Assembly: GCA_003693705.1 (NCBI GenBank) | Contig: RBZT01000673.1 | Span: 126,876-190,875 of the forward strand | Direction of reading: 5' to 3' | DNA from: Polymyxa betae A26-41 | Lineage: Eukaryota; Protista; Endomyxa: Phytomyxea | DNA length: 64,000 nucleotides | In this document: piece after piece, positions 20,079 through 58,966 of the stretch | How positions within the stretch are numbered: position 1 is the first letter of the stretch | How the letters are laid out: every line of letters starts with the position of its first letter | Translations under genes and position numbers: made by a program | The notes under the pieces: model-generated | Database searches by the model: none | What the model saw: only the letters and a program-made list of their open reading frames with translations | What the model was told of the DNA's origin: nothing

Positions 20079-20585
20079 ATGTCGATCGAACTATTCCTTA
20101 CTATCACAATTCTTTCATTAGCACATGCTGATTTTGCTGAACAACCAGACAGTGCCATCATAGTGAGCGGTACCTCATTAATACCAGGCGATAGCCGCTT
20201 CAGCAAGTCCCAACAATACAAGCTAACGTTTGATGGAGATATTCATTTGATGCAATGGAGTGTTGATGCATATTATCCTGAAGGCTGGTATGGGACCTAC
20301 GTCTGGAGTATCTGCAGTAATCAGACCGGAGCGACATTCAGCATGAGATACGATGGCAATCTGGTCTTAGAAGATGCTTATGGAACCCTGTTATGGTCTC
20401 ATGATCAGAACAAAGATGGATCAACATCAACTCCGTATTATGCTATGGTTGGCGATGGAGGGAATCTGGTTGAGTTCACTTACAGTGGAATCATGATCTG
20501 GAACAGCTCGAACCCCGATACACAAAATAGTGGTACGAGCCTCGCCAAGTTGAAATATGGGGATTGCTTATCTGTCAATTGGTAA
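20079..20585 (+). CDS. Secreted bulb-type (B-) lectin-like protein
   Basis: Signal peptide (..SLAHA-D); beta-prism II-like repeats MRYDGNLVLED..GTLLWS and VGDGGNLVEF..IMIWNS; paralog at 48612-49163. Confidence 0.7.
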   Translation: MSIELFLTITILSLAHADFAEQPDSAIIVSGTSLIPGDSRFSKSQQYKLTFDGDIHLMQWSVDAYYPEGWYGTYVWSICSNQTGATFSMRYDGNLVLEDAYGTLLWSHDQNKDGSTSTPYYAMVGDGGNLVEFTYSGIMIWNSSNPDTQNSGTSLAKLKYGDCLSVNW

Positions 20586-42933: not shown

Positions 42934-45384
42934 ATGTTCTATCCAAGGCTCTTGTTGTTATGTTCTGTATTCATCATAATCTTGGTATCATGGTCGCAAG
43001 CATTGTCGTGTCGTACCTGCTCGCAGCAGGCGACCGGACCCCAAACTGATGCCTTGATTGTTGCTCATTTCACAGATTGGAAGCATTATCTAATGGTGCC
43101 TCTTGGCGGATTGATATCGATTATCAATGGATCTCTTTATACACATCTGGTTATGGGTGTGTCTTCTGTATCAAATGGTCTCTGCATAATTGCTGATGGC
43201 TGGGCTTCCCTACAACTATCATTTACAAGCACATCATTGGGATCTGATGTCAATGACCCATACAAAGGGAACCTGAACCAAGCTCGACGTTTGAAACTCG
43301 CCTATCCACACTTGAAAACAATCCTGGAGGTGACCTCGTCTGGAGGTTTCAGTACAGCAGCTGCTGATTCGGCAAATCGAGCGAAGCTGGCCACATCGTG
43401 TGTTAGTTTGATGCAGCAATACAATCTTGATGGTATTCAGATCAATTGGGGTATGTAACTACCATTAACATCTTTGTTATGCTCTTAATAGTATATTATA
43501 GCCAATCCTGGAACATCAGATTATAACAATTTTGCACTGTTGGTTGCATCATTTCGATCTGCGATTCAGACCTCAACGTATCCAAATGCGACATTATCAA
43601 TATCAGCAAACTTCGATCCTGCAAGATGGAAGTCTGAGTACAATATCGCGGCCATGGCTCCGTATTTGGACTGGATAAATGTCAGATCGTTTTGGTATTG
43701 GGGTGGATCTAATTCTATAGTTGGTCATACAGCCAATCTATTCCCAGCTGGTCCATCATCACCACATTCTCGTTCTGTTGCTCAGGATCTGCAATCTGTC
43801 CTCGACCTACCAATGTCTTCGTGTAAATTACTTATGGGAATTCCGTCATTCGGATCAGTATGGAAGCTTCCATCGGCGCCGGCGTCTCTGACATTGCCCA
43901 GCTTTTATGCTGTTGGCGCAAGCACTGGCTTAGAAGGCGGTGCTGAATTCTCAAGTTATCTAGACTTTGATGTTCAAAGGTTATTATCGAATGGGACATG
44001 GACGACCATTTGGGATTCAACAGCTCAAGCTTCTGTTTATTACAACCCATCATTACTCAATTTCATCACATACGATTCTGCAGAGTCACTGAATGCAAAG
44101 ATGCAATGGGTACTGGACAATAACCTGGCAGGAGTTTCAATTGAAGACGTAACTGGTGATCTCAGATATAACAGGATCTCATCAACAGCTGTTAAGAAGT
44201 TCGAGTCATCTCGACCCTATCCCAAATCAAGAAGCTCAACGAAGAAGTTTCTAATCACCAGCTCACAACAGCTATTTAGTGTATCCAAACAGGGCCCTAT
44301 CTCGACATCATCCAGATCACAAAGCCAAACATCAACAACAAATTCACCGTCTTCAACGATTTCGTCCATTCAGAAGACGGCAAAAACGTCGTCATCATCC
44401 CAGAGCAGTTCAATGAACATATTGTCGAGCCATTCAAGTTCAGCCAGTTCTGGATCGTCTAAATCAATGCCAAGTCCTGTTGTAGCAACACCCTCTATCG
44501 TGGGATTTTCTGCAATCGCCCTCAGGTCTACAAGCACGCGATTGGCGCCGGTCTCCCCCTCGCAGAGCTCAGGCAGCAGATCACGTTCCAGATTTCCTAC
44601 GATGTAAGTGTATTGGTTACGAGGTCGTGTAGAATATCAATCTCTCAACAGAACTGATACCTCTATTGGCACCTCATTCAACGCTTGGATGGTCTCCTTG
44701 GCCATTCTTTGTGATACTCGACAGTACACCGATGATAGACGTCAATTGGAAGATGCCTATTTACGTAGTGCCCTTTCGAAGTCGCTGAATGTCGACCAGA
44801 CTCAATTCGTAAATGCACAGCTTGTTTCAAGTACTCAGGCGACAACGTCAGTCTCGTTTTTGGTGCTGCCGAGATCGTCATTGGGCGTTCCTGAAGGCGA
44901 TGAAATCTCTGCACTGTTCACATCACAGATGCAAGAAACGTCGAGCTTCTTGAGGCAGAATTCTATTCTTGGTTTTGCGTTGTCACCGCCGACTCCAATA
45001 TCAGTATCGCAGGTGTCTGTTCGTCGTTGCGGTCAAGATTCCTACATAATAATTAGATCTAACAGCGACAAATGCCCTACAAACACGCTCGCAACACAAT
45101 CAACAAGTTCAAAAGTCACAATCATTGGTGTCGCTGGTGGAATTGCTTTCTTAGGGGTCTTGGGCGTAGGCCTTTGGCTATATCGAAAACCAAGGTTGAT
45201 GGGCCTCGAACAGCCTGCCAACGTTGTATATTTCAACGGAATGACCCAAGAAGATCCTGATGGCCATCCGTTGTCGCTCAAAGATGGTGCTGTTATTCTG
45301 GGACCTTTCACGACCAGCTCTTATGGTAGTAGTGACCAGGCATTCACGAGCTACAGCATAGTTCAAAGGACGAATACTTTGTAA
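42934..45384 (+). CDS. Type-I membrane protein: signal peptide, non-catalytic GH18 domain, Ser/Thr stalk, SEA-like domain, TM and short tail (about 783 aa)
   Basis: Exons 42934-43450, 43502-44603 and 44652-45384 join in frame; GH18 motifs (KGNLNQ.RRLK..YPHLK, YLDWIN, WDSTAQA, ITYDS.ESL..K); catalytic motif reads DGIQINWA; TM IIGVAGGIAFLGVLGVGLWLY. Confidence 0.88.
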
Positions 45385-46247
45385 ATAATATAATAGATGT
45401 AATATACAGGTATTATTGTAGACGTGGTACGAACTCGTAAAGTTCTAAAGTACTTAAAGGTTCAGCTCCGAGGGTTTCTGATGTTCGGGATCTTGGTCAG
45501 ATTGGATCCCTAACCACCCGGATCGAAACGTTGGATACCTTTCCCGAATATATATGGCCTAAGAACCCGGAATGGCGATGCGCCCATTTGTGCTGCAGGA
45601 ACATAATGGACCGAAATAATCTATATTCGAAGGCATGGGTAATGCCCAAGGTAATTCAGGTCCCATACAATTACAAGTCAGAAGAGCATCGTAGGTCGTC
45701 AGAAAATCGAATTCTCTGGCCGGACAATAATGCCAGCCCAGCCCCGATCGACAAGTCGCCGAATTCAACGCTGATGTCGGTTTTGAACAGGCGGTTCTTT
45801 AGAGCGTTTGTTAAAGCAGCTGGAAAGCGTTAAGCTTGACAAAGTTTCCCCTTTCCTGAGTAATTACATTGAGTAATTGGTGAAAGGAATCAGAAATTGG
45901 CAGCAGCGGTTCATCTAATACATTAAGCTTCGATCCTGATTTGTCTCTCTAAAACCAGGACATAGCGAACACCACGAAATTGATGTTGTCTTTCAAGAGC
46001 AATCCGAATAATTATTTGGATGTAGTCGTTGTTCGCGGAACAACCGAGCCATGATACTTCTGAAGCAGGAACATTCCACATGCTCATTCATTAAGCAATT
46101 CTACGTGGGAGTAATGAAAGCGATGTCGCCTTTCTACGTCGTAAAAGTCGTGGATAACTTCCGATCTCGTTCATGTACTGATCGCCTATATCGATATCTA
46201 AGCGATACCGCTGGTAAATATCTCTCCTCGAATTGCCTCAAACGTCC

Positions 46248-48581
46248 ATGAAAGCCGCTCTTCTATTCCTAACTCTTCTATTCCACCAAGCCCAATCGTT
46301 ATCATGTCGAACTTGTGCCCGGGACACAACTGGACCTAGAACTGATGCGTTGATCATCGGTCAATATATTGATTGGAAATACTATACATTAGAGAGCTAT
46401 GGAGCTGTCATATCTAATATTAATGCGTCTATATATACGCATATAGTGATGACTGTATCATCAGTATCTAATAAGTCATGTATCATATCAGATAGATGGA
46501 TCTCATTACAGAACTCCTTTACTAGTACAACATTAGGCTCAGATACCAATGATCCATATAAAGGTATCCTGAATCAAGTTCGGAAATTGAAGCTGCTCTA
46601 TCCACATCTGAAAGTGGTTCTGGGGATGACTGATGCCCCTCCATCCACCAAGCTATCTGTAGTCGCAGCCGATTCCACTTTCCGAACTCAACTCGCCCAA
46701 TCCTGTGTTAATATGATGCTGCAGTATGGTCTGGATGGCATTCAGATCGATTGGGGTCAGTTTCTATGATCGTTTTGACTGATACCATTATCATCTAAGT
46801 ACTTATTTCATAGCTAAGCCAAATCCAACCGGTTCGACTCTAGCCGATCCTAATAATTATATTCTATTAGCGGCCGCTTTTCGTTCAGCGATAGCCAGCT
46901 CGACCAAACCGACGGCAACACTGTCTATTAGTGCAATATTCGATCCTTGGACAATGAACCAACATTTCAATTTGACAGGAATAGCTCCATATTTAGACTG
47001 GATTAATGTTAGACCATTTTGGTATTGGGGCGGTTCAGATTCTGTCATTGGTCATACTGCTAACTTAGCTTCACCTGGCTCATCATCACCACATTCTCGT
47101 TATGGAGCACAAGATATACAGACCGTTATCAGTAAATCTGTACCATCATGCAAGATAATCATGGCTATACCAGCCTTTGGATTTGCATGGCAGCTGCCAT
47201 CAGCACCATCATCGCTGTCACTTGCGAATTTCTACAAAGTTGGGACATCTACAGCGATATTTGACGGCTCCGAGAATGGACGGTACATTGATGTTGATAT
47301 CCTGCCTCTGACAAAGGCGGGATCAAACGTCACGACTGTTTGGGACTCTACAGCTCAAGCCTCGGTTTATTACCAGGCTTCATCCCGTTTACTGTTTACT
47401 TATGAGTCGACACAATCTGTTAATGCCAAGATGCAATATGTTGTCGATAATAATCTCGCTGGAATCCTTGTCGATGATATGGGATGTGACATGAATTGGA
47501 ATCTGATCGCAACAGCTGCTTTCAATAAGTTTCGGTCACTACGACCTTGCGTAGCAACCAGCAAAAATCTGACTACCAGAAGATCATCTCTGGGTGTGTC
47601 AAGCAATACGAGAATTAATTCGGCGTCGTACCAATGGAGGTATCCGTCAATGGTAATAACAGTCGTTGATTTTTCTCTGCATTGATTGAAGCCTTGTTTG
47701 CAGCCGATCACTAATCCGTCGACCTATGCAAGCTCAGCGTCAGCAGATTCGTATGTATACTGTAATAGCCATGTCTAATTTGGTCTTCTGAGGTTTCATG
47801 TAGATCGGCGAATGGAACACAAATTGACATGCCATTCTGGGCAGCCATGGTATCACTGCCCTTGCAACGAAGTCTGACAAAATATTCATCGGATAGGAAG
47901 CACACTGAGCTTCAATTCTTCATTGCTGATGCATCCAACGCTCTGTCAATCGATTCTAATCAGATTGTTGATTGTGTGTTGATGGCGAATGGACCGTCTG
48001 CAAGCATATTATCATTTACATTGCTGCCTGGCTCACACACAGCTCTGGATACAGCAAATGAATTCTTCAATCAGATGCAAGATTCTAGTAGCAGGCTACG
48101 CCAAGGAGCGTTGCTACAATTTGCCCCAGAGCCTCCCTTTGTCATCTCAATCACCTCTGTTCGAGTACGTCGTTGTTCCGGCAACATGATTATATCAGCG
48201 AGCTCTCAATGTTCCGATTTGAGTTCTGAGAATAACCAATCACACTTCTTTATGATGCAAACCACGTCGATAATCGCATCAGTATGTGGCTTGATGTTAG
48301 TATTAGCTTTGCTGCTGTGGATTTGTGTTTATAAGAAAAAGAGTCATCTACGTAATGTTAAAGGGCAACACCAGCAAGAGACTCCAGTTGGAAAAGAAGT
48401 TGCTGTTGGGCCGACAGCAGTTCCAGAGCCTGTACAAAATCTGGTATCGTTCTTCCATCAAGGACCTCTTGATAGCCCTACACCTATGCTAGATGTAGCT
48501 AGTTATTACTCGTCAGATGACGCATGGCATCAGCAACAACAGCAACAGCAACGACACTATCGACCTGGTCAAACATTATAA
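46248..48581 (+). CDS. Tandem paralog: type-I membrane non-catalytic GH18 protein
   Basis: Same architecture and highly similar GH18 domain; introns about 46756-46813, 47653-47703 and 47751-47803; catalytic motif reads DGIQIDWA; TM IIASVCGLMLVLALLLWICVY; poly-Q in tail. Confidence 0.88.
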
Positions 48582-48611
48582 TACATTATTACAGCCAGCA
48601 AGAACATAATT

Positions 48612-49163
48612 TTATGTAGACAACAAACTGCTACTACAATCACCATATTGGAAGCAGGCCCCTTTGCTACTGCCAGAGTTCTGGTCGGTACCATTAACAG
48701 TGGACCAGATCAGGTCACCGTTACTCGATGTGTTGTAGTATGAGTATTCGTTCAACTGAGCGGAATCGTCCAAACTGACCAGATATGGACCATAGTGTGT
48801 GCTGCCCGAGCTTACGTCGTTAACAGGATTCGACCACAACAGAACTCCAAGTTTTGATCGCATTTGCAGGTTGCCCGCTTGGTTCAGCGTCAATGTTTCG
48901 CCAAGCTGGTCGCCCGTTGGGCAAATCGCCCATAGAACCGTCTCATACATTCCAGTTGGATGCTGTTCGTCGGACGTCCATTGAAGCAATTTGACAGCTC
49001 CATCGCGAAACACGAGTTTGAAATCCTGCTTGGGGCTGTACAGGCAGGCATCGCCATCGTTTGTCAATGTGAATCCAACTGGTATCACACTTGATTGTGT
49101 GGAATCGCCATGGACCATAACACCAAAGGCAAATAGTAGGAGCGTCGTCAATGTTCTTACCAT
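48612..49163 (-). CDS. Secreted bulb-type lectin-like protein (paralog of 20079-20585)
   Basis: Signal peptide; LTLNQAGNLQMR..GVLLWS and LDDSAQLNEY..LIWS repeats; shares LxQW, W(S/A)IC and QNSG....YGDC with the 20 kb paralog. Confidence 0.7.
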   Translation of the reverse strand: MVRTLTTLLLFAFGVMVHGDSTQSSVIPVGFTLTNDGDACLYSPKQDFKLVFRDGAVKLLQWTSDEQHPTGMYETVLWAICPTGDQLGETLTLNQAGNLQMRSKLGVLLWSNPVNDVSSGSTHYGPYLVSLDDSAQLNEYSYYNTSSNGDLIWSTVNGTDQNSGSSKGACFQYGDCSSSLLST

Positions 49164-49336
49164 GGCTGTGAACGTTTCGAGAGAGTTAAACTTATGAAAA
49201 ATGAACTCTTACGAAAAAACCAATTCAAGAAACGAGCGAACGAATGACTCATGGTGACTCACGTCAGACTATAACACTTCAGAAATTTAAAAAACCAGAG
49301 TTGAATTATATCGTGATGAATTATATCGTGAATATA

Positions 49337-51375
<2,039 letters not shown>

Positions 51376-51742
51376 TTGCTGATAGAGCAGGAAATGATCC
51401 AGAACTTTCAGAGTGAAAGTCAGTGACAGAAATCCGAAAAATTCAGGATATTTTGCTACAGCACTGTTCAGCTCAGCCTTTTCCTCCACTTAGCAAAAAG
51501 ATTGTGAGTTGTTCCAGTTATTCACGCAGAGTTTCAAAAAAAATTTTTGCAGAGAAATTCATCTCAGGGATGGCTAATTAGTTTAATGGCATCCACTGCT
51601 GAGCGTAAGGCATTTGCGAATTTATCGGAGCTCTACGACCTTTCAAACATTTAAGATTTGATTACTTATCTCAAAGAATTTGCTGATATTTAAATCAAAT
51701 TAATGATTAATCCCAGTAAAGACTCCTTTAAATGCACAAATA

Positions 51743-52535
51743 TTATTGTTGATGCTGAATATTGAAGGACGGCCAGTCTGCTTTTGGGTATTCCCGCTTG
51801 AGGATTTCTTCAGGCTGTTCGTCGAGCATTCTGAAACAAGAGGTAAGCCGACGATCGCCCAGAGATAGCATGAGTATTACCGCTCATATTCTTGTGTCAT
51901 AAACAAGTTCTTTTTGCAGTCGACTTTATCTATAAACAAGCGACCGTCTAGGTGATCGATCTCGTGTTGAACAGTCCTGGCATTAATCCCATGCAAGACA
52001 GTGCTTTGTGGCTGAGAATCGGCATCGAGATAATCAACCGATAAGGAATGCCATCGAGGAACCAGTCCCGTTAATCCTAAACAGATATAATCCCAGACAG
52101 CTACTGATTTCAAAATACGAGCACACCTGGAATACTGAGACATTGCTCCCAGTCGTTAATGATATCATTACAATGCGATTTGATGACCGGGTTGATCATA
52201 ACTATAGGAGGCAGGAATTCATCGAGCTCTTCTGAATCCGAATTGTCGACGTATGGGCAATACAGGAACATTCGAAAGCTACGCTGAACCTGGGGAGCAG
52301 CAAGCCCGATTCCATTCAAGGTTTCGTCGGATAACATCGACTGCATTTCTTTGATTAAATTTTGAAATTCCGGTTTGGATATCGCACTGCGCTCGACAGC
52401 TAGAGCTTGACGACGAAGAACTACCGACGTGGTCAGCAACGGAAACCGCATTGTAGAGCAACTCTGACCTGGATTGCCTAAATAGCATAGGCGTAGGAAA
52501 GACTTGGCAATCTGGCCGACCATTGGCGGTCCCAT
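51743..52535 (-). CDS. PDF: Peptide deformylase (organellar)
   Basis: GIGLAAPQV, EQCLSIPG and QHEIDHLDG motifs; short introns. Confidence 0.92.
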
Positions 52536-52804
52536 TATGGCAAAAGACAAGTCGGAAACGATCGAGATTGCAGTTGAAAACTGCTTTTCGTCAGAAGTAC
52601 GCAATTGTTGGCAGAGTCATAATCCTGTAATTCAAGGGATCGGGAATTTGTGATTCATGACATGGAAGGGATCACCGCTGCACCAGGAATCGGCGAAATT
52701 GTCCACTAATACTATATGACCAGTTTTTGAATCAGTAATGATCGAAGACGTCAACGGAATGTATGTTTCTTTATTAGAACAGTTTAAATGCAAATACGGA
52801 GCAC

Positions 52805-53562
52805 ATGTGGGCAAGCTTCGCCAGGACCCTCCCACGTGTCATAATAGGATTCTATCTGATCAATTTGTAAAATGCACCACCATCTGCGACGTATTCGTCC
52901 GGCTGCATCTAGTACTCTAGGACCTTGCTCCGTCCTCTTTTTTAATACCATATTGGCTGGAGCAGATTTTGAACTCTATGTTGAGTAGTTGTCTGGAACC
53001 AGAATTCGTCCCATCATGCCACCTGGACGTCAAACCGGACAACAGGCAGAAAGCTGCAGCTGGATTGGGTAGGAGTCGGGCCATGATGTATGTTTGGCAA
53101 CTGCATGCTTCCAACGCTTCGAGCCTATGCGATTGGTCTCTATCTCCATCCCGATGTCAAGAGAAGAAAATCGTTGACGGGGCTGTATTCAAGCAATGAT
53201 ACGAAACGTGTTTGTCAATTCTGCATAGACATGTTAGCGCAGATCATTTCGCTGGAGGTTTCTGATTTATAAGAAAACATTTGAATGTTCCAGATTCTGA
53301 TGAATCAGAATCCGATCTGAAAGAGCTCGTTGCCACCTTCCAACGTCAAGGATTGGTTCAATATTGGGATAAACTCGGTTTCGTTTGGAACACCGATCGA
53401 TCATTACTGGTTTACAAAAACGAAATGATGTTATTCAACTCGAACTCATCAACCGTAAGCCAAGCTGCGCTTCAGAATTACATCGGCTAAGACCCGATGT
53501 CGTCCATTGCCAGAGATAACTTTCGTAGGCTCTTGAACAGTATCGCTTTAGAGCAATCGTAA
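52805..53562 (+). CDS. Possible spliced hypothetical gene
   Basis: Exon-like segment ENILNVPDSDESESDLKELVATFQRQGLVQYWDKLGFVWN flanked by AG/GT sites; 5' structure unresolved. Confidence 0.3.
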
Positions 53563-53755
53563 TGCTTCACAGAAGTATAACAAGGTATCATTATCATCTT
53601 CATTCTCAGATTTTGTCAATCCTTGCACATTGTAAAGAAGTCTACTGGTTATCCTGGATAGAACGATCGATGGTACGTAATTACTGGATAAGGTCGAGTT
53701 TATGGAGAGAGTTACTGAACCATTGCCATGTATTTTAGCCCTATGAGTTACTGAA

Positions 53756-56700
53756 ATGAATTTTAGCCCTATCTTCTACATTGTTGTCGTTCTTTGCATT
53801 GACAAATGTAAAGCTTATTTACCATGCCAGTCATGCACAGTGTCAGGGCCAAAGACGTCTTCGCGTTTAATTGGTTACTACTATAGAACCAAGGTCGATG
53901 CTCTTCCAATTGAGTCGATCGATGCTGGATCGTTGACGCACCTGGTTTGGAATGGATTCACCGTCGCGAATGGCCGTTGCGAGATTTCTAATCTGAATAC
54001 TGATTTACAACAAACGTATGGCTCGAATTCGCTGGGTATTGATGTTGATGCCGCATATCATGGTCAACTATATCAGCTTCGCTTACTAAAGCTCAAATAT
54101 CCTCACTTAAGCTTGCTCGTCACGATCCCTGGAATTTTTCAGACTACCGGTGTTTCCAGTCTAAATACAAGAGCCTCCTTGGTATCCTCATGTGCTGCTT
54201 TGGCTCGGCAGTACCTTTTCGATGGCGTCGAATTCGATTGGGGTAAGCCAGAATTGAGGCCTCGCCATCACTGATTGTATACCCAGTCATCACCACCGAC
54301 GGCGATAAGTTCGAGTTTGCTCAACTGTTGTCGGCCTTCAAGCAAGCAAACGCAAACCTGACTGTCGTCTCTCAGATCAGGGGCCCTTTAGCGACTATGT
54401 ATTCACGTTATGATTTCACTACCATCTCTGCCAGTGTCGACTGGGTCCATTTCTCTGCATTTAATTTATGGGAGTCAAGTCTAAGACCAGGTTAGTGGAG
54501 TCCAGTCGGTGATGTTACCCCGCATTAAATAACCAATTGTAGGTCATCACTCGCCTCTCTACTGGTCTCCTTACTCTCCAGTATACGACTCGGTTGACTC
54601 CTGGGTCCGGTATTTGCTAAAGAATGGAGTTCCACCTTGTAAGATTGTGCTGGGACTATCGTTGTCGGGGCCCGCCTGGTCGTTGACGGATTCGGTTTCA
54701 CCGACCAGCCCAGATGCCATCTTGGCGATATTCAATCAAAGCAGGGCCATGGTTTACAGTGGCAGGTTTGCCGGCGGTTACCGGCTCCGTTTTAGAGACG
54801 TTAGCCATTCCTTCAGCTTGGTTTTTGATGCCGCTTGTCAGACCTCAGGCTACCTGAGTTCTCAAACGTTTGCATCTGTGGAGGGGATTCAAGCCATGCA
54901 AATTAAGGCCAGATATGCATCGCATCAGAATTTGGGCGGCATCTATTTGCATGATCTCAGTGCTGATATCCCTTCAAACGGAATTGTTCAGGCGGTTCGG
55001 TCAGCGCTTGTTCCGCTGACGCCATGCAAGAATTTGATCGCAAACACTCAATCATTGTCAACGCCTACGAATTCAGTTAAAAGCTCTACTGCCACGATTA
55101 ATACCAAAGTTGTCACTTATCTTACTATGAACAATATCGATCATGTTGAGGGAAATCAGTTCACTCATGCTATTTACGACCAGTTGAATTGGACCAGTAT
55201 CTCGATGGATACGCGATCGTCCATGATCGATCTTAACCTTCGCCGCATTGCTACGTTCAGAAAAAAATACCCCCAAGTCTGTTTATTGCTACAAGTTGGC
55301 AACAACATCGAGTTTTCCAAAGTCGTTGGGAATAATGCAACGAGGATGGCTCTTGTATCAGCCATTATCGCCAACGTCAACTATTTTGAATTCAATGGCG
55401 TATCTGTAAACTGGGGTATGAAGTGCAAATGCTGCTTAAGGATTATTAACGGGGTTTGTAGATGATACGTCCGGACAGATTAGCAACAAGTTTCACCTTG
55501 CTACGTTTATGTCTCAGCTGCAGTTGCGGCTGAGCTCAGATTCTGCTTTAACAATGGAACTGAAATTCCGGACAGAATCGTTCGATGTCCGTTATAACTT
55601 GACTCTCGTCGATTCTTTCGTCGATTGGTATCATGTACGACCTTTTGATTTCGGGTTTGTTGGATAGAGATTCTTGTGATCAAGTCTGAATCCGATTTAG
55701 ATTGCAGGTAGCAGTTCCGTTCACATTCTCTTCGTGGTATTTGCCTGACACTGGCGCTAATTTCTTTGACAAAGTTTTGGTGCTATCGGCTTTAAACAGG
55801 ATACTAATTGAACCCATTTTACCATCCAAAATTGTTTTGGTCCTGCCAATGTTCGGGCTTCAGCTAATTTCCACGTACATGGACACATGGATGTATCTCG
55901 CTTGGTATTATCCAGCCATACTACAATCGTCCGTAATTCCTAGTGCAAACGTCATCAAGGCAGCAAATACGGCCGGTTGGGTCCAGTTAGCTGATCCAGT
56001 CCCTAATGTTACTTTGCTTTATCAACAATCTTTGGCACAAATGATTCTCTACGATGGCATTGGAAACATCATCACCAAAGTCGATCAGGCCAAGACTTGG
56101 GGTTTAGCGGGAGTTGGGTTTTATGACGTGTCGACTAATGATGCTCGAGTAGCAACTGCAATAGCAAGGTTACCAAAAAACGACATAACCCCCATATCAT
56201 CATCACCTCGACCTGTTCTGACGTCCGCAACATCTGTTCAACCGAGCTTTTCGTCTCAAGACTCGTTAATGCCCCTTGGCGTCTGTAATCAAATTTCTAT
56301 CAGCAAATTAGTGCAATGGAATATCGCGGATTTTCCGATCATGCTCCAATCAGTTATCCCAGACCCAAGTGTTCTACTTACATCTGGTTGGACTTCACCG
56401 AAACTTGATCTCTCGTCTGCTTCTTTCGTATTAAACTCTCCCGCTGACCTTGATCTGGTTTTATCATCACGATCGCTAAAGGAAAACTATGCTGGTCAAC
56501 GACTATTCTTCTTTCTAAACCTTTCGTGCTCTGATCCTAACCATTCCAGACCTACTAATGTTATCATTCCAACGTCGTTGGCAATTCCGCCTCGCACACC
56601 AACCCCTGAAGGTTTGACAATCACACCAAATACTGGCGAAGCGCTTCTCACTGTTTTCAATCTTGAAGTAAGTGGCGATTATCATCAATCGGCATGCGCG

Positions 56701-58966
56701 CGATACTTTGTTTATCTCGGCAACGCTCAGGTCCCACTTGGTGATGGGAACTGCATTCCGACATTTTTCTCTCTCAAAACCGTGTTACCAGCTTCAGATA
56801 ATAGTTCGGTTGTTATAGTCGCTGTCGAAGTTGTTGATAATGGCGTTGTTTCGGAAGGACTGGCGAATGTCACTGTTCAGATTTCAGCTCCGGAAATTTC
56901 TTTAAATTACATCGAAGACATATTTACACCCAACTCTAGAATACCTTTTTGCGATCACGTTTTGTCCACAGTATCCATAATCAGCCGTCTTTCAGTCAAC
57001 ACAACAACGGTACGAGCAAGAATAATGGAGATGATAAAAACGCAGTATCTTGAAGCACCTGCATGCCCACCGGCTAGTTATCAAGATCTTGCTTTTATAA
57101 CTGTCACATCAGAGCTCTTGAAGGTAATCATGTTTGTCATCTGCTTCAGCTCGACTTATTAATCTGTAGGATCCGACTGATCTCAATAATGGTATCGCCC
57201 AGGATGCATTAGATGTGATCAACAAGGCGATGAATAAGACTGATGTCATGCAGCATCGTCTTTTGCGGGAAAGAATTGCTATTTTATTATCGTCCTTGTT
57301 GTTATCTAAAGCGTCAAGTGGGACTTTATCTTACATGCAGTCGATTCGAAACATTATCGATCGCTTGGCAGTGAGCGGTCTCAGTAATTTAGCGGGTGGG
57401 GAACGCGATTCGTGTCGTCGCTCAATTAGCACCGATGCTTTCAATATCCAAACATACAAGCTACATGCACTTGGTCTAAATTCTGCTCCTTCGTGCTCTG
57501 TTACGCTGCCTCTGGATTTAGTTACCCGATATCGAGGCAGAACAGTTGGTGTAGTCTCAACAATTTATCAGCTTGTTTCGGGGTTACCGTCTACGACCAA
57601 TCTCGTCCATTCTGTTAATGTATATATCGATAACAGTGGACCGGCTACCATTCAGAATGCAAGCTCGCCATTTAAAATCAATATGGGATTAATGCCGTCG
57701 TCTGGCGTTCGTTTGGAGTGTGGCTGGATTCTGCCCAATGGGCGCGATATATCGAAGACAGGATGTGAAACCCAAATCGCTGAAAATCGTATCGTTACAT
57801 GTAACTGCTATCATCTAACCGATTTCGTTTTGATAATCACTGAAAGTGAGAGTATTACTTTCGTTAGCTCCAATACCAAAGATGTGCAATCCTGGGCGTT
57901 TTCACTGGCGAATCTATTTAATCTCGCTCTTTCGGTTGTTTCTTTATTTTTAGGATGTTTCGGAAAGTACGTCATAACAAATGCCGAATCATATAAGACT
58001 TTCTCGATTATGGCAATCCTTATTGTGGTAAAGTGTGTCGCTCGAGCTGCATTCTATGGTACGATACTGTTTGGAGGTATCAGACCCAATGGCGACCTCT
58101 TTCTTGCTAGATTGATGTTTGGCACAATCACCCAATTCTCACAATTTATGATTTTCGGTTATCTGCTATGCCTCCTCATTATCATTCTATCATCTATCGT
58201 AACAATGAACGAGAAACCCCTGGCGCTTCGTAATTTCCTCTTCTTATTTCAGTCTGTCATCAAGGTTCTTATTGTAACATCGCTTGGGGTTCCTGCATTA
58301 CTGATTTACGGGTCGGTTCGTTTTGACAGCCAAGGAATGTTTTTTGCCGCATCTGCTTACATTCTTATATTAAATATACTACTGACTTTATCTATTCCTG
58401 CCACCGGAATCATCATCGCGCGATATCTGGTAAATCATTCACACAAGAGAGTTATTTCAAACAACTTTGCTATTAAGAGGTCTGGTATTCAGTCACTTTG
58501 TCGAATGGAAGCATTAAACGAAAAAATTAGGTATTTAAAACTGGCGAAGTTTATGCGAATAATTACAATTGCGATGGGCATCTGTTTATCATTACAGGCA
58601 GGACTCTGGACATGGTCAATTGTTGGTTTAGAATCATATAATAAGAACACTAACGGCAGTCTGGCCTTCGTTGTTTTGGATACGGTTGCTACTTGTCTTG
58701 TTCTGACCTATCAATGTAATGTGGCCTGGACACAATACTGCAAAAAGAAACGAGAAGAGTCTCTTATCGAGAAGAACGTCGCTGCTCACTTCCGTGATGA
58801 CGCCGTTCGTGTTGTCAACGAGCAGTTCGTATACGTGGAATCAAAGCGAATCAAGGAACCCTCTGTTTGGGACAATGTCTTTGATGAGTTTGCTAATGGA
58901 CTTGGTTCTAAACATATGTCGTTCGATAATGATTATTCAAGCGATGATGGCAGTAGGCCTTGGTGA
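53756..58966 (+). CDS. Adhesion-GPCR-like receptor: signal peptide, 2x non-catalytic GH18, REJ/PKD-like, GAIN/GPS, 7TM (about 1650 aa)
   Basis: ORFs 53756, 54614, 55702 and 57215 join via five short GT-AG introns. GH18 motifs DGVEFDW|V and NGVSVNW|D; REJ-like PP..P.GLTITPNTGEALLTVF; GPS CGW...GC...TCNCYHLTDF; seven hydrophobic helices follow. Confidence 0.85.

Follow-up and report, generated by a model that had tools for sequence, protein, structure and literature searches.

Three genes on the plus strand of a stretch of the Polymyxa betae A26-41 genome (contig RBZT01000673.1 of assembly GCA_003693705.1, positions 126,876 to 190,875; this stretch of 64,000 nucleotides is referred to below as the window) encode membrane-anchored proteins whose N-terminal heads are GH18 domains, the glycoside hydrolase family 18 fold of chitinases, without the residues needed for catalysis. 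We call these genes A, B and C; together they span about 16 kb, from 42934 to 58966. Our preferred reading, to which we assign a probability of roughly 60%, is that they are surface proteins with non-catalytic GH18 heads, with A and B built on a SEA-like chassis with a single transmembrane (TM) helix and C on a module of the type found in adhesion G-protein-coupled receptors (GPCRs), and we propose that they serve glycan recognition and signalling. The anatomy of the proteins is secure, and it is their function that we infer.

Plasmodiophorids parasitise roots, transmit viruses and cannot be cultivated; Polymyxa betae is a parasite of sugar beet roots. How these organisms sense their hosts and their own walls is hardly understood, and gene C offers a defined candidate GPCR whose likely class of ligand lends itself to testing. 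The draft genome, described as comprising 1,001 contigs and 27,085,946 bp at 45.1% GC (PMC6328671), was published without annotation; the GC content of the region lies at 40-48%.

Gene structures and shared architecture

On the open reading frame (ORF) map the plus strand appears fragmented until introns are removed. Excision of introns of 44-58 nt with GT..AG borders turns A, B and C into one open frame each; gene A has two (51 and 48 nt) and gene C five (44-52 nt). Each exon was queried separately in the database and fold searches, and the joined, spliced models were used for alignment, tree building, hydropathy and dN/dS analysis only. The model of C is supported by collinearity over its whole length with CRZ05295.1 of Spongospora subterranea, and the gene B intron at 47653-47703 is likewise absent from the database protein BVRB_028890, which corresponds to a fragment of gene B. 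BVRB_028890, hypothetical, partial and filed under Beta vulgaris, is near-identical to gene B and lies on a contig of 801 bp; it is evidently contamination of the beet assembly by Polymyxa, its root parasite.

An initial annotation of the window had described three same-strand genes with related N-termini within 16 kb, and all three are found on the plus strand. The N-terminal motifs it listed (CxxC, GPxT and LG.D...Y.G..Q.R.LKL.YPHL) are visible in our GH18 alignment, and its division into two types of membrane module agrees with what we see: A and B have one TM helix each, and C has a GPS motif followed by seven hydrophobic helices. Gene A reads, in order, signal peptide, inactive GH18 domain, Ser-rich linker, SEA-like domain, one TM helix and a tail of 68 residues, and gene B has the same architecture.

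The GH18 heads have lost their catalytic residues

All four GH18 domains (one each in A and B, two in C) match Pfam PF00704 exon by exon, with E values of 5e-8 to 4e-22. In gene A, exon 1 matches at 2e-13 and exon 2 at 4.4e-22; domain 2 of C matches weakly, its first half at 7.7e-6 and its decayed second half at 0.051. Among solved structures the head of A comes closest to chitinases of bacteria and insects and to the chi-lectins YKL-40 and Ym1.

In every one of these four copies a phase-1 intron lies inside the former codon for the catalytic Glu, with the splice donor directly after TGG G. After splicing, the position reads Ala in A (DGIQINWA), Ala in B (DGIQIDWA), Val in C domain 1 (DGVEFDWV) and Asp in C domain 2 (NGVSVNWD). 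The initial annotation had called these domains dead: the absence of the Glu stands in all four after splicing, but the "DWG" it had read at this place comes from reading through into the intron. The losses extend well beyond the Glu. In the GH18 alignment one Asp or more of DxDxE is missing from each of the four domains. Where MxYD would have its YD they carry FW, FN or FD (A and B read FWYWGG), and in GGxxxWE the Trp, which lies at the floor of the -1 subsite, has given way to E, D, H or Y; this Trp is replaced in every member of the clade described below. By contrast, two canonical GH18 genes elsewhere in the genome, on contigs C720 and C1, retain DGVDI.WEYP, MxYD and the Trp, and have their intron elsewhere.

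The catalytic Glu, the DxD pair, the YD and the Trp have also been lost from the Spongospora and Plasmodiophora counterparts, and the exceptions that keep the Glu are the second domain of the Spongospora protein, which retains it without the two Asp, and a fourth Polymyxa gene of this type, which we call D. In the assembly gene D is split over two contig ends (C991:285-725(-) and C132:3-1775(+)). Its N-terminal half reads DGINLDW|EYPTGGG, with the Glu codon (G|AA) intact and an intron in the same phase-1 position, here of about 146 nt, and its C-terminal half runs into the same SEA-like stalk and one TM helix as in A and B. Because D has the same intron and yet a Glu codon, the intron is older than the loss of the Glu.

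Comparison of A with B gives a non-synonymous divergence (dN) of 0.33 in the head; the corresponding values are 1.12 (linker), 0.80 (stalk domain) and 0.95 (TM helix and tail), with synonymous divergence (dS) saturated. The inactive head is the slowest-evolving part, and a domain that is retained and constrained in this way argues for a working pseudoenzyme, not a relic; from this conservation we predict that the GH18 heads are working pseudoenzymes.

A and B stand on a SEA-like stalk

An AlphaFold2 (AF2) model of the domain next to the membrane, built on an alignment of 13 paralogs, has a pLDDT of 87.3 and the topology beta-alpha-beta-beta-alpha-beta. VIA structural matches of the model are Trop2 (Z 9.9), IA-2 (7.6), the SEA domain of MUC16 (6.8-6.9) and PCDH15 MAD12 (6.6), with further matches to SorCS2, CELSR1, TMPRSS6, the dystroglycan complex and Gpr126. 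These Z values are middling and point to a shared fold, with homology to SEA domains unproven; Foldseek with the stalk returned nothing significant, and a stalk profile found no match among PDB sequences. In the alignment of 13 copies the SEA cleavage motif G|SVVV is absent, the equivalent strand reading LSFVxLP with no Gly-Ser, and a conserved Cys pair follows the last strand of the domain.

The last exon of A matches 24 loci in the genome, many of them in local arrays, so that the stalk cassette is present at 24 loci at least; examples are C872:34805-48457, C841:2565-8773, C244:4234-9964 and C857:15109-20636. Three of the long ORFs tested (L021:1579-3630(-), L024:1633-3558(-) and L013:961-2217(+)) have a SUEL-type lectin domain ahead of the stalk. 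We regard A and B as two members of a large predicted family of mucin-stalked single-pass proteins with heads of carbohydrate-recognition type.

Gene C joins two GH18 domains to a GPS and seven helices

The two GH18 domains of C are followed by a middle region that is conserved with Spongospora CRZ05295.1 and has no Pfam match at E <= 0.1 and no match among PDB sequences. We considered a REJ identity for this region and rejected it, as there is neither Pfam nor PDB support and no similarity to the REJ gene of this genome.

Next comes a GAIN-like region with the pattern C..W..GC..CxC, ending in a GPS that reads CNCYHL|TDF. PF01825 (GPS) matches at 19.3 bits in hmmscan; in the genome scan it scores 23.2 bits, which exceeds the cut-off. 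A profile of the GAIN/GPS region from five sequences has adhesion GPCRs for all of its top 14 PDB matches, led by ADGRL3 (5.7e-6). Four homologs keep the GPS, the HL|T triad and a Stachel-like strand, and HLT with TDFVLII is kept in Spongospora and two metagenomic homologs. On the strength of the HL|T triad, cleavage at the GPS is predicted. The first TM helix begins about 26 residues past the triad.

An exhaustive HMMER search with the seven-helix exon found 11 relatives. They include the Spongospora ortholog (two GH18 domains, GPS and seven helices), a pair of close metagenomic fragments, a metagenomic protein with GPS and seven helices without GH18, GPS-bearing receptor kinases and REJ proteins. 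Two of these relatives combine LRR repeats, a GPS, one TM helix and a protein kinase, placing GPS/GAIN-type domains on receptor kinases outside animals. In phmmer a mussel ADGRL3-like receptor (GAIN, GPS, 7tm_2) matched at 6.9e-4, and BLASTP aligned it with C collinearly from GAIN-B through the fourth TM helix; the Trp of the sixth helix is conserved in C. ESM Atlas features for the seven-helix part (0.79-0.83) were below the useful range and were treated as noise. A metagenome scan with the GPS-7TM alignment gave two loci that match in the GPS alone and added no depth to the profile.

The GPS-7TM module is single-copy in the genome, which also has eight or more G-alpha loci. Besides C, a GPS occurs at one locus only (C892:15000-21000), which combines PKD/REJ, EGF and GPS in the manner of polycystin-1/REJ proteins, and its gene is related to SPQ98477.1 of P. 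brassicae (LRR, REJ, GPS and SH3). Membership of C itself in the polycystin-1/REJ family was rejected: it has no REJ match, its seven helices are joined by short loops, and it shows no similarity to the REJ gene of the genome.

The cytoplasmic tails of A, B and C carry Y-x(0-1)-SSD within their last 25 residues (45310-45381, 48500-48578 and 58930-58963). In a motif scan A has Y-G-SSD 20 residues from its end and C has Y-SSD 10 residues from its end. The tails of other members of the stalk family and of Plasmodiophora PBRA_008583 end in acidic serine clusters of the SDSD type. The element may be a common sorting signal or a signal for CK2-type phosphorylation.

Phylogeny and counterparts in other plasmodiophorids

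We built a maximum-likelihood tree of 12 GH18 domains: those of A, B and D, both domains of C, two from Spongospora, two from Plasmodiophora PBRA_008583, two canonical Polymyxa domains and one metagenomic chitinase. The nine domains of the window type form one clade (98/100) against the canonical Polymyxa and metagenomic chitinases, so that the monophyly expected for the four window domains holds against the GH18s in the tree. A and B, whose GH18 domains are 58% identical, are sisters (100/99) and D adjoins them (84/93). Domain 1 of C falls together with the first domains of the proteins from Spongospora and Plasmodiophora (100/98), and the second domains of those two proteins pair up with each other (86/91); domain 2 of C sits on a very long branch (4.13) and has no firm placement. 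Across the three genera, the residue at the Glu position of domain 1 is V, L and V.

The best full-length relative of C is Spongospora CRZ05295.1, which is 32% identical and has the full architecture of C. Plasmodiophora PBRA_008583 has two inactive heads, a Ser/Thr linker and a single TM helix, with no SEA-like stalk; tblastn of its locus for a downstream seven-helix exon found none, and an exhaustive HMMER search returned no P. brassicae homolog of the seven-helix module. The same type of head is therefore seen on three anchors, namely a SEA-like stalk with one TM helix, GAIN/GPS with seven helices (Polymyxa and Spongospora) and a plain linker with one TM helix (PBRA_008583), in keeping with the domain shuffling that the initial annotation had proposed. 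Duplication, its other proposal, is borne out by the A/B pair of sister tandem copies and by the single clade that holds all four window domains. The tree does not agree, however, with a locus assembled by one recent shuffling event, because orthologs of C domain 1 in both Spongospora and Plasmodiophora mean that the lineages parted before the genera diverged. In Plasmodiophora the genes around PBRA_008583 are unrelated, with neither a GH18 nor a lectin gene inside 10 kb. As far as the tree indicates, the clade is plasmodiophorid-specific and older than the split of the genera, and the only recent local duplication is that of A and B.

We recognised four genes of this clade in the 27.09 Mb genome, three of which lie inside 16 kb. 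By our own arithmetic the probability of this arrangement by chance is about 1e-6, so the clustering is beyond chance.

Part of this family has been noticed before. The GH18 tree of Schwelm et al. 2015 (PMC4471660) includes PBRA_8583 and a two-domain Spongospora transcript, and according to its text and legends the "Pd1" group is plasmodiophorid-specific, arose by gene duplication together with internal domain duplication, and is drawn with TM segments. The same source describes the P. brassicae "Pd1" GH18 genes as expressed mainly at spore formation and germination, and terms the proteins chitinases that act on the spore wall; its text and legends make no mention of loss of catalytic residues, of a GPS or of seven TM helices. 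As far as that description goes, the clade of the window is probably the "Pd1" group.

Discussion

The arrangement suggests how these proteins could work. The heads would bind a glycan without cutting it, the leading candidates being chitin or chito-oligomers, whether from the spore wall of the parasite itself or from its surroundings. Plasmodiophorids build spore walls of chitin, and with the P. brassicae relatives peaking at spore formation and germination this makes chitin the first ligand candidate. A and B would act as adhesins or wall sensors. In C, engagement of a ligand, or a pull on the cleaved N-terminal fragment, would expose the tethered TDFVLII strand, and the exposed strand would activate the seven-helix domain and, through it, one of several G-alpha proteins. 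The GPS, the HL|T triad, the Stachel-like strand, the profile matches to adhesion GPCRs only and the G-alpha loci make a GPCR-type output of C plausible. A bolder version, which we hold to be less likely than not, is that C and its Spongospora ortholog are the first GPCRs with a chitinase-derived pseudoenzyme head, wall-tethered or chitin-gated, which in an obligate plant parasite and virus vector would report on the condition of the chitin spore wall, or on chitin-type cues in the vicinity of the host root, to G-proteins, and that the single-pass paralogs are parallel sensors on a chassis like that of signalling mucins.

Several points weigh against these proposals. The splice sites of A, B and C are predicted from the open frame, the size of the introns and homology. 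Remodelling of the -1 subsite means that binding of chitin by the heads is not assured and binding of GlcNAc oligomers is an assumption, and the decay of C domain 2 has gone so far that this domain may be a mere spacer. No signalling domain can be recognised in the tails of A and B. For the seven-helix part of C, hhalign reached 94% probability for the GPS portion alone, Pfam 7tm_2 gave no match at E <= 0.1, and an AF2 model of the GPS-7TM exon from the single sequence shows seven long helices at a poor pLDDT of 40.7; homology of the helix bundle to family B is therefore putative.

The published label implies another role, that of working, membrane-anchored chitinases that remodel the chitin spore wall. 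The GH18 fold, the expression of the Pd1 genes at spore formation and germination (PMC4471660) and the Glu retained in gene D and in the second Spongospora domain would fit it. We consider it highly improbable, since the Glu, one Asp or more of DxDxE, the YD and the -1 Trp are missing from every window domain, whereas the canonical chitinases of the same genome keep them all. A different question is whether the heads still bind sugar at all. They could instead be protein-binding or structural modules, making these proteins adhesins or binders of host proteins, and there is precedent in the GH18-fold non-enzymes XIP-I, narbonin and concanavalin B. The replaced -1 Trp, the change of Asp215 to an aromatic residue (FWYWGG in A and B) and the heavy decay of C domain 2 all point that way. 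Against this, the head is under the strongest constraint of any part, and paralogs on the same stalk bear true lectin domains, which suggests glycan recognition at the head position; we judge the loss of sugar binding unlikely, if worth keeping in mind, and continue to favour non-catalytic heads that recognise glycans.

Two further alternatives concern the output of C and the locus as a whole. The GPS-7TM part of C might be a G-protein-independent anchor for adhesion or mechanosensing, or a polycystin-type relative. The missing 7tm_2 match is consistent with this, as are a family-B TM3 motif that we could not recognise by inspection and the PKD/REJ type of the genome's only other GPS gene. But C has seven helices, not eleven, the loop between its first and second helices is not long enough for a PLAT domain, and REJ is not matched; its collinearity with an adhesion GPCR through the fourth helix and its conserved Trp in the sixth speak for a receptor of that type, so we hold this alternative to be rather unlikely. 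It has also been suggested that A, B, the neighbouring lectin gene and C work jointly as a receptor with co-receptors or decoys and are kept together for that purpose. Three of the four clade genes do lie within 16 kb, the lectin gene ends 30 nt from B, and Y-x(0-1)-SSD near the C-terminus is unique to A, B and C; unrelated genes stand between them, however, the lectin has a paralog elsewhere amid unrelated genes, and the two-GH18 gene of P. brassicae has no such neighbours. A jointly working system is accordingly quite unlikely in our estimate.

The closest comparison for C is with the adhesion GPCRs of class B2, such as latrophilin/ADGRL3, with which it shares a large modular ectodomain, a GAIN region ending C-x-C-x-H-L|T-x-F, a hydrophobic tethered-agonist strand and seven helices. 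It differs in that its ectodomain is a pair of inactive GH18 domains, its helices are too diverged for 7tm_2, and the organism that carries it is a rhizarian parasite, not an animal. Latrophilins carry a SUEL/RBL lectin head, whereas in Polymyxa SUEL domains sit on the single-pass paralogs. For the heads, the chitinase-like lectins (YKL-40/CHI3L1, Ym1 and the insect IDGFs, matched at 1e-8 to 1e-10) share the GH18 fold with the Glu replaced and are kept under selection. They are secreted and soluble and keep their groove tryptophans, whereas the Polymyxa heads are anchored in the membrane and have lost the -1 Trp and the YD motif as well. The stalk resembles the SEA and membrane-adjacent domains of MUC16, IA-2, Trop2 and PCDH15 (MAD12) in its ferredoxin-like fold, placed at the membrane below a Ser/Thr-rich stalk, but has no sequence similarity to them, lacks G-S-V-V-V and has the Cys pair after its last strand. 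With the plant LysM receptor kinases CERK1/CEBiP and the GH18-ectodomain kinase CHRK1, named as analogs in the initial annotation, the Polymyxa genes share the concept of a carbohydrate-binding or chitinase-like ectodomain joined to a membrane signalling module; they have neither LysM nor kinase, and their output is GAIN-7TM or a short tail, so the analogy is functional only.

Databases already contain the parts of these proteins under names that say little, and the family is on record as "chitinases"; in our literature searches no paper connected GH18 with a GPS or 7TM module. If our preferred reading is right, a published group of chitinases would be recast as non-enzymatic surface receptors, and the adhesion-GPCR design of GAIN/GPS autoproteolysis and tethered agonist would extend to Rhizaria with a type of ectodomain not seen in animals. 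The family also offers a clean natural case of one binding head moved among three membrane anchors, of relevance to protist signalling and to the evolution of adhesion GPCRs.

Feature coordinates and neighbouring genes

Table 1. Features of the window (position 1 is its first nucleotide; a bar within a motif or codon of a GH18 head marks the splice junction)
Feature	Coordinates	Strand	Details
Lectin paralog	20079..20585	+	168 aa, signal peptide; 28 kb upstream
Gene A	42934..45384	+	783 aa; exons 42934-43450, 43502-44603, 44652-45384
GH18 head of A	43006..44199	+	aa 25-405; motif DGIQINW|A 43429-43503; intron 43451-43501; G|CC = Ala
Ser/Thr-rich mucin-like linker of A	44200..44574	+	limits approximate; from translation
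SEA-like membrane-adjacent domain of A	44665..45078	+	aa 545-682; AF2 model
TM helix of A with cytoplasmic tail	45109..45381	+	TM 45109-45177, about aa 695-713; hydropathy scan
Gene B	46248..48581	+	723 aa; exons 46248-46755, 46814-47652, 47704-47750, 47804-48581
GH18 head of B	46302-47511	+	motif DGIQIDW|A (G|CT)
SEA-like domain of B	47823-48212	+	
TM helix of B	48264-48332	+	about aa 621-639; hydropathy scan
Secreted B-lectin-fold protein	48612..49163	-	183 aa, signal peptide; stop 30 nt from gene B stop
Peptide deformylase	51877-52604	-	PF01327, two exons; between lectin ORF and gene C
Gene C	53756..58966	+	1658 aa; exons 53756-54242, 54287-54490, 54543-55415, 55462-55654, 55701-57123, 57170-58966
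GH18 domain 1 of C	53819..55036	+	aa 22-395; motif DGVEFDW|V (G|TC); intron 54243-54286
GH18 domain 2 of C	55094..56178	+	aa 415-745, strongly decayed; motif NGVSVNW|D (G|AT); intron 55416-55461
Middle region of C	56179..56943	+	aa 746-1000; conserved with Spongospora CRZ05295.1
GAIN-like region and GPS of C	56944..57859	+	pattern C..W..GC..CxC; HL|T 57812-57820; TDFVLII from 57818
Seven-helix TM block of C	57896..58720	+	aa 1303-1577; hydropathy scan, low-confidence AF2 model
Cytoplasmic tail of C	58730..58963	+	

Unrelated genes, such as that for peptide deformylase, lie between the lectin ORF and gene C, so the GH18 "cluster" is not contiguous. The secreted B-lectin-like gene described in the initial annotation as tail-to-tail with B is upheld by its signal peptide, by the spacing of the two stop codons, and by ESM Atlas and a paralog. 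The lectin ORF has no Pfam match. Its ESM Atlas feature score is 0.90, and all ten structure rows are B_lectin clusters with TM-scores of 0.56-0.64; a profile of the lectin gave weak matches (0.032) to monocot lectins among PDB sequences. On inspection all three of its QxDxNxVxY mannose-binding sites are degenerate, one of them reading NQAGNLQMR.

The paralog is 42% identical to the lectin (E 6e-22) and matches PF01453 at 6.6e-5, below the gathering score. Because it stands amid unrelated genes, we see nothing that ties the lectin functionally to the GH18 genes, and the lectin gene is probably a mere neighbour of B. The paralog keeps a better site, of the type DGNLVLE, and its own neighbours are a C2H2 zinc-finger ORF and an unrelated ORF of 422 residues.

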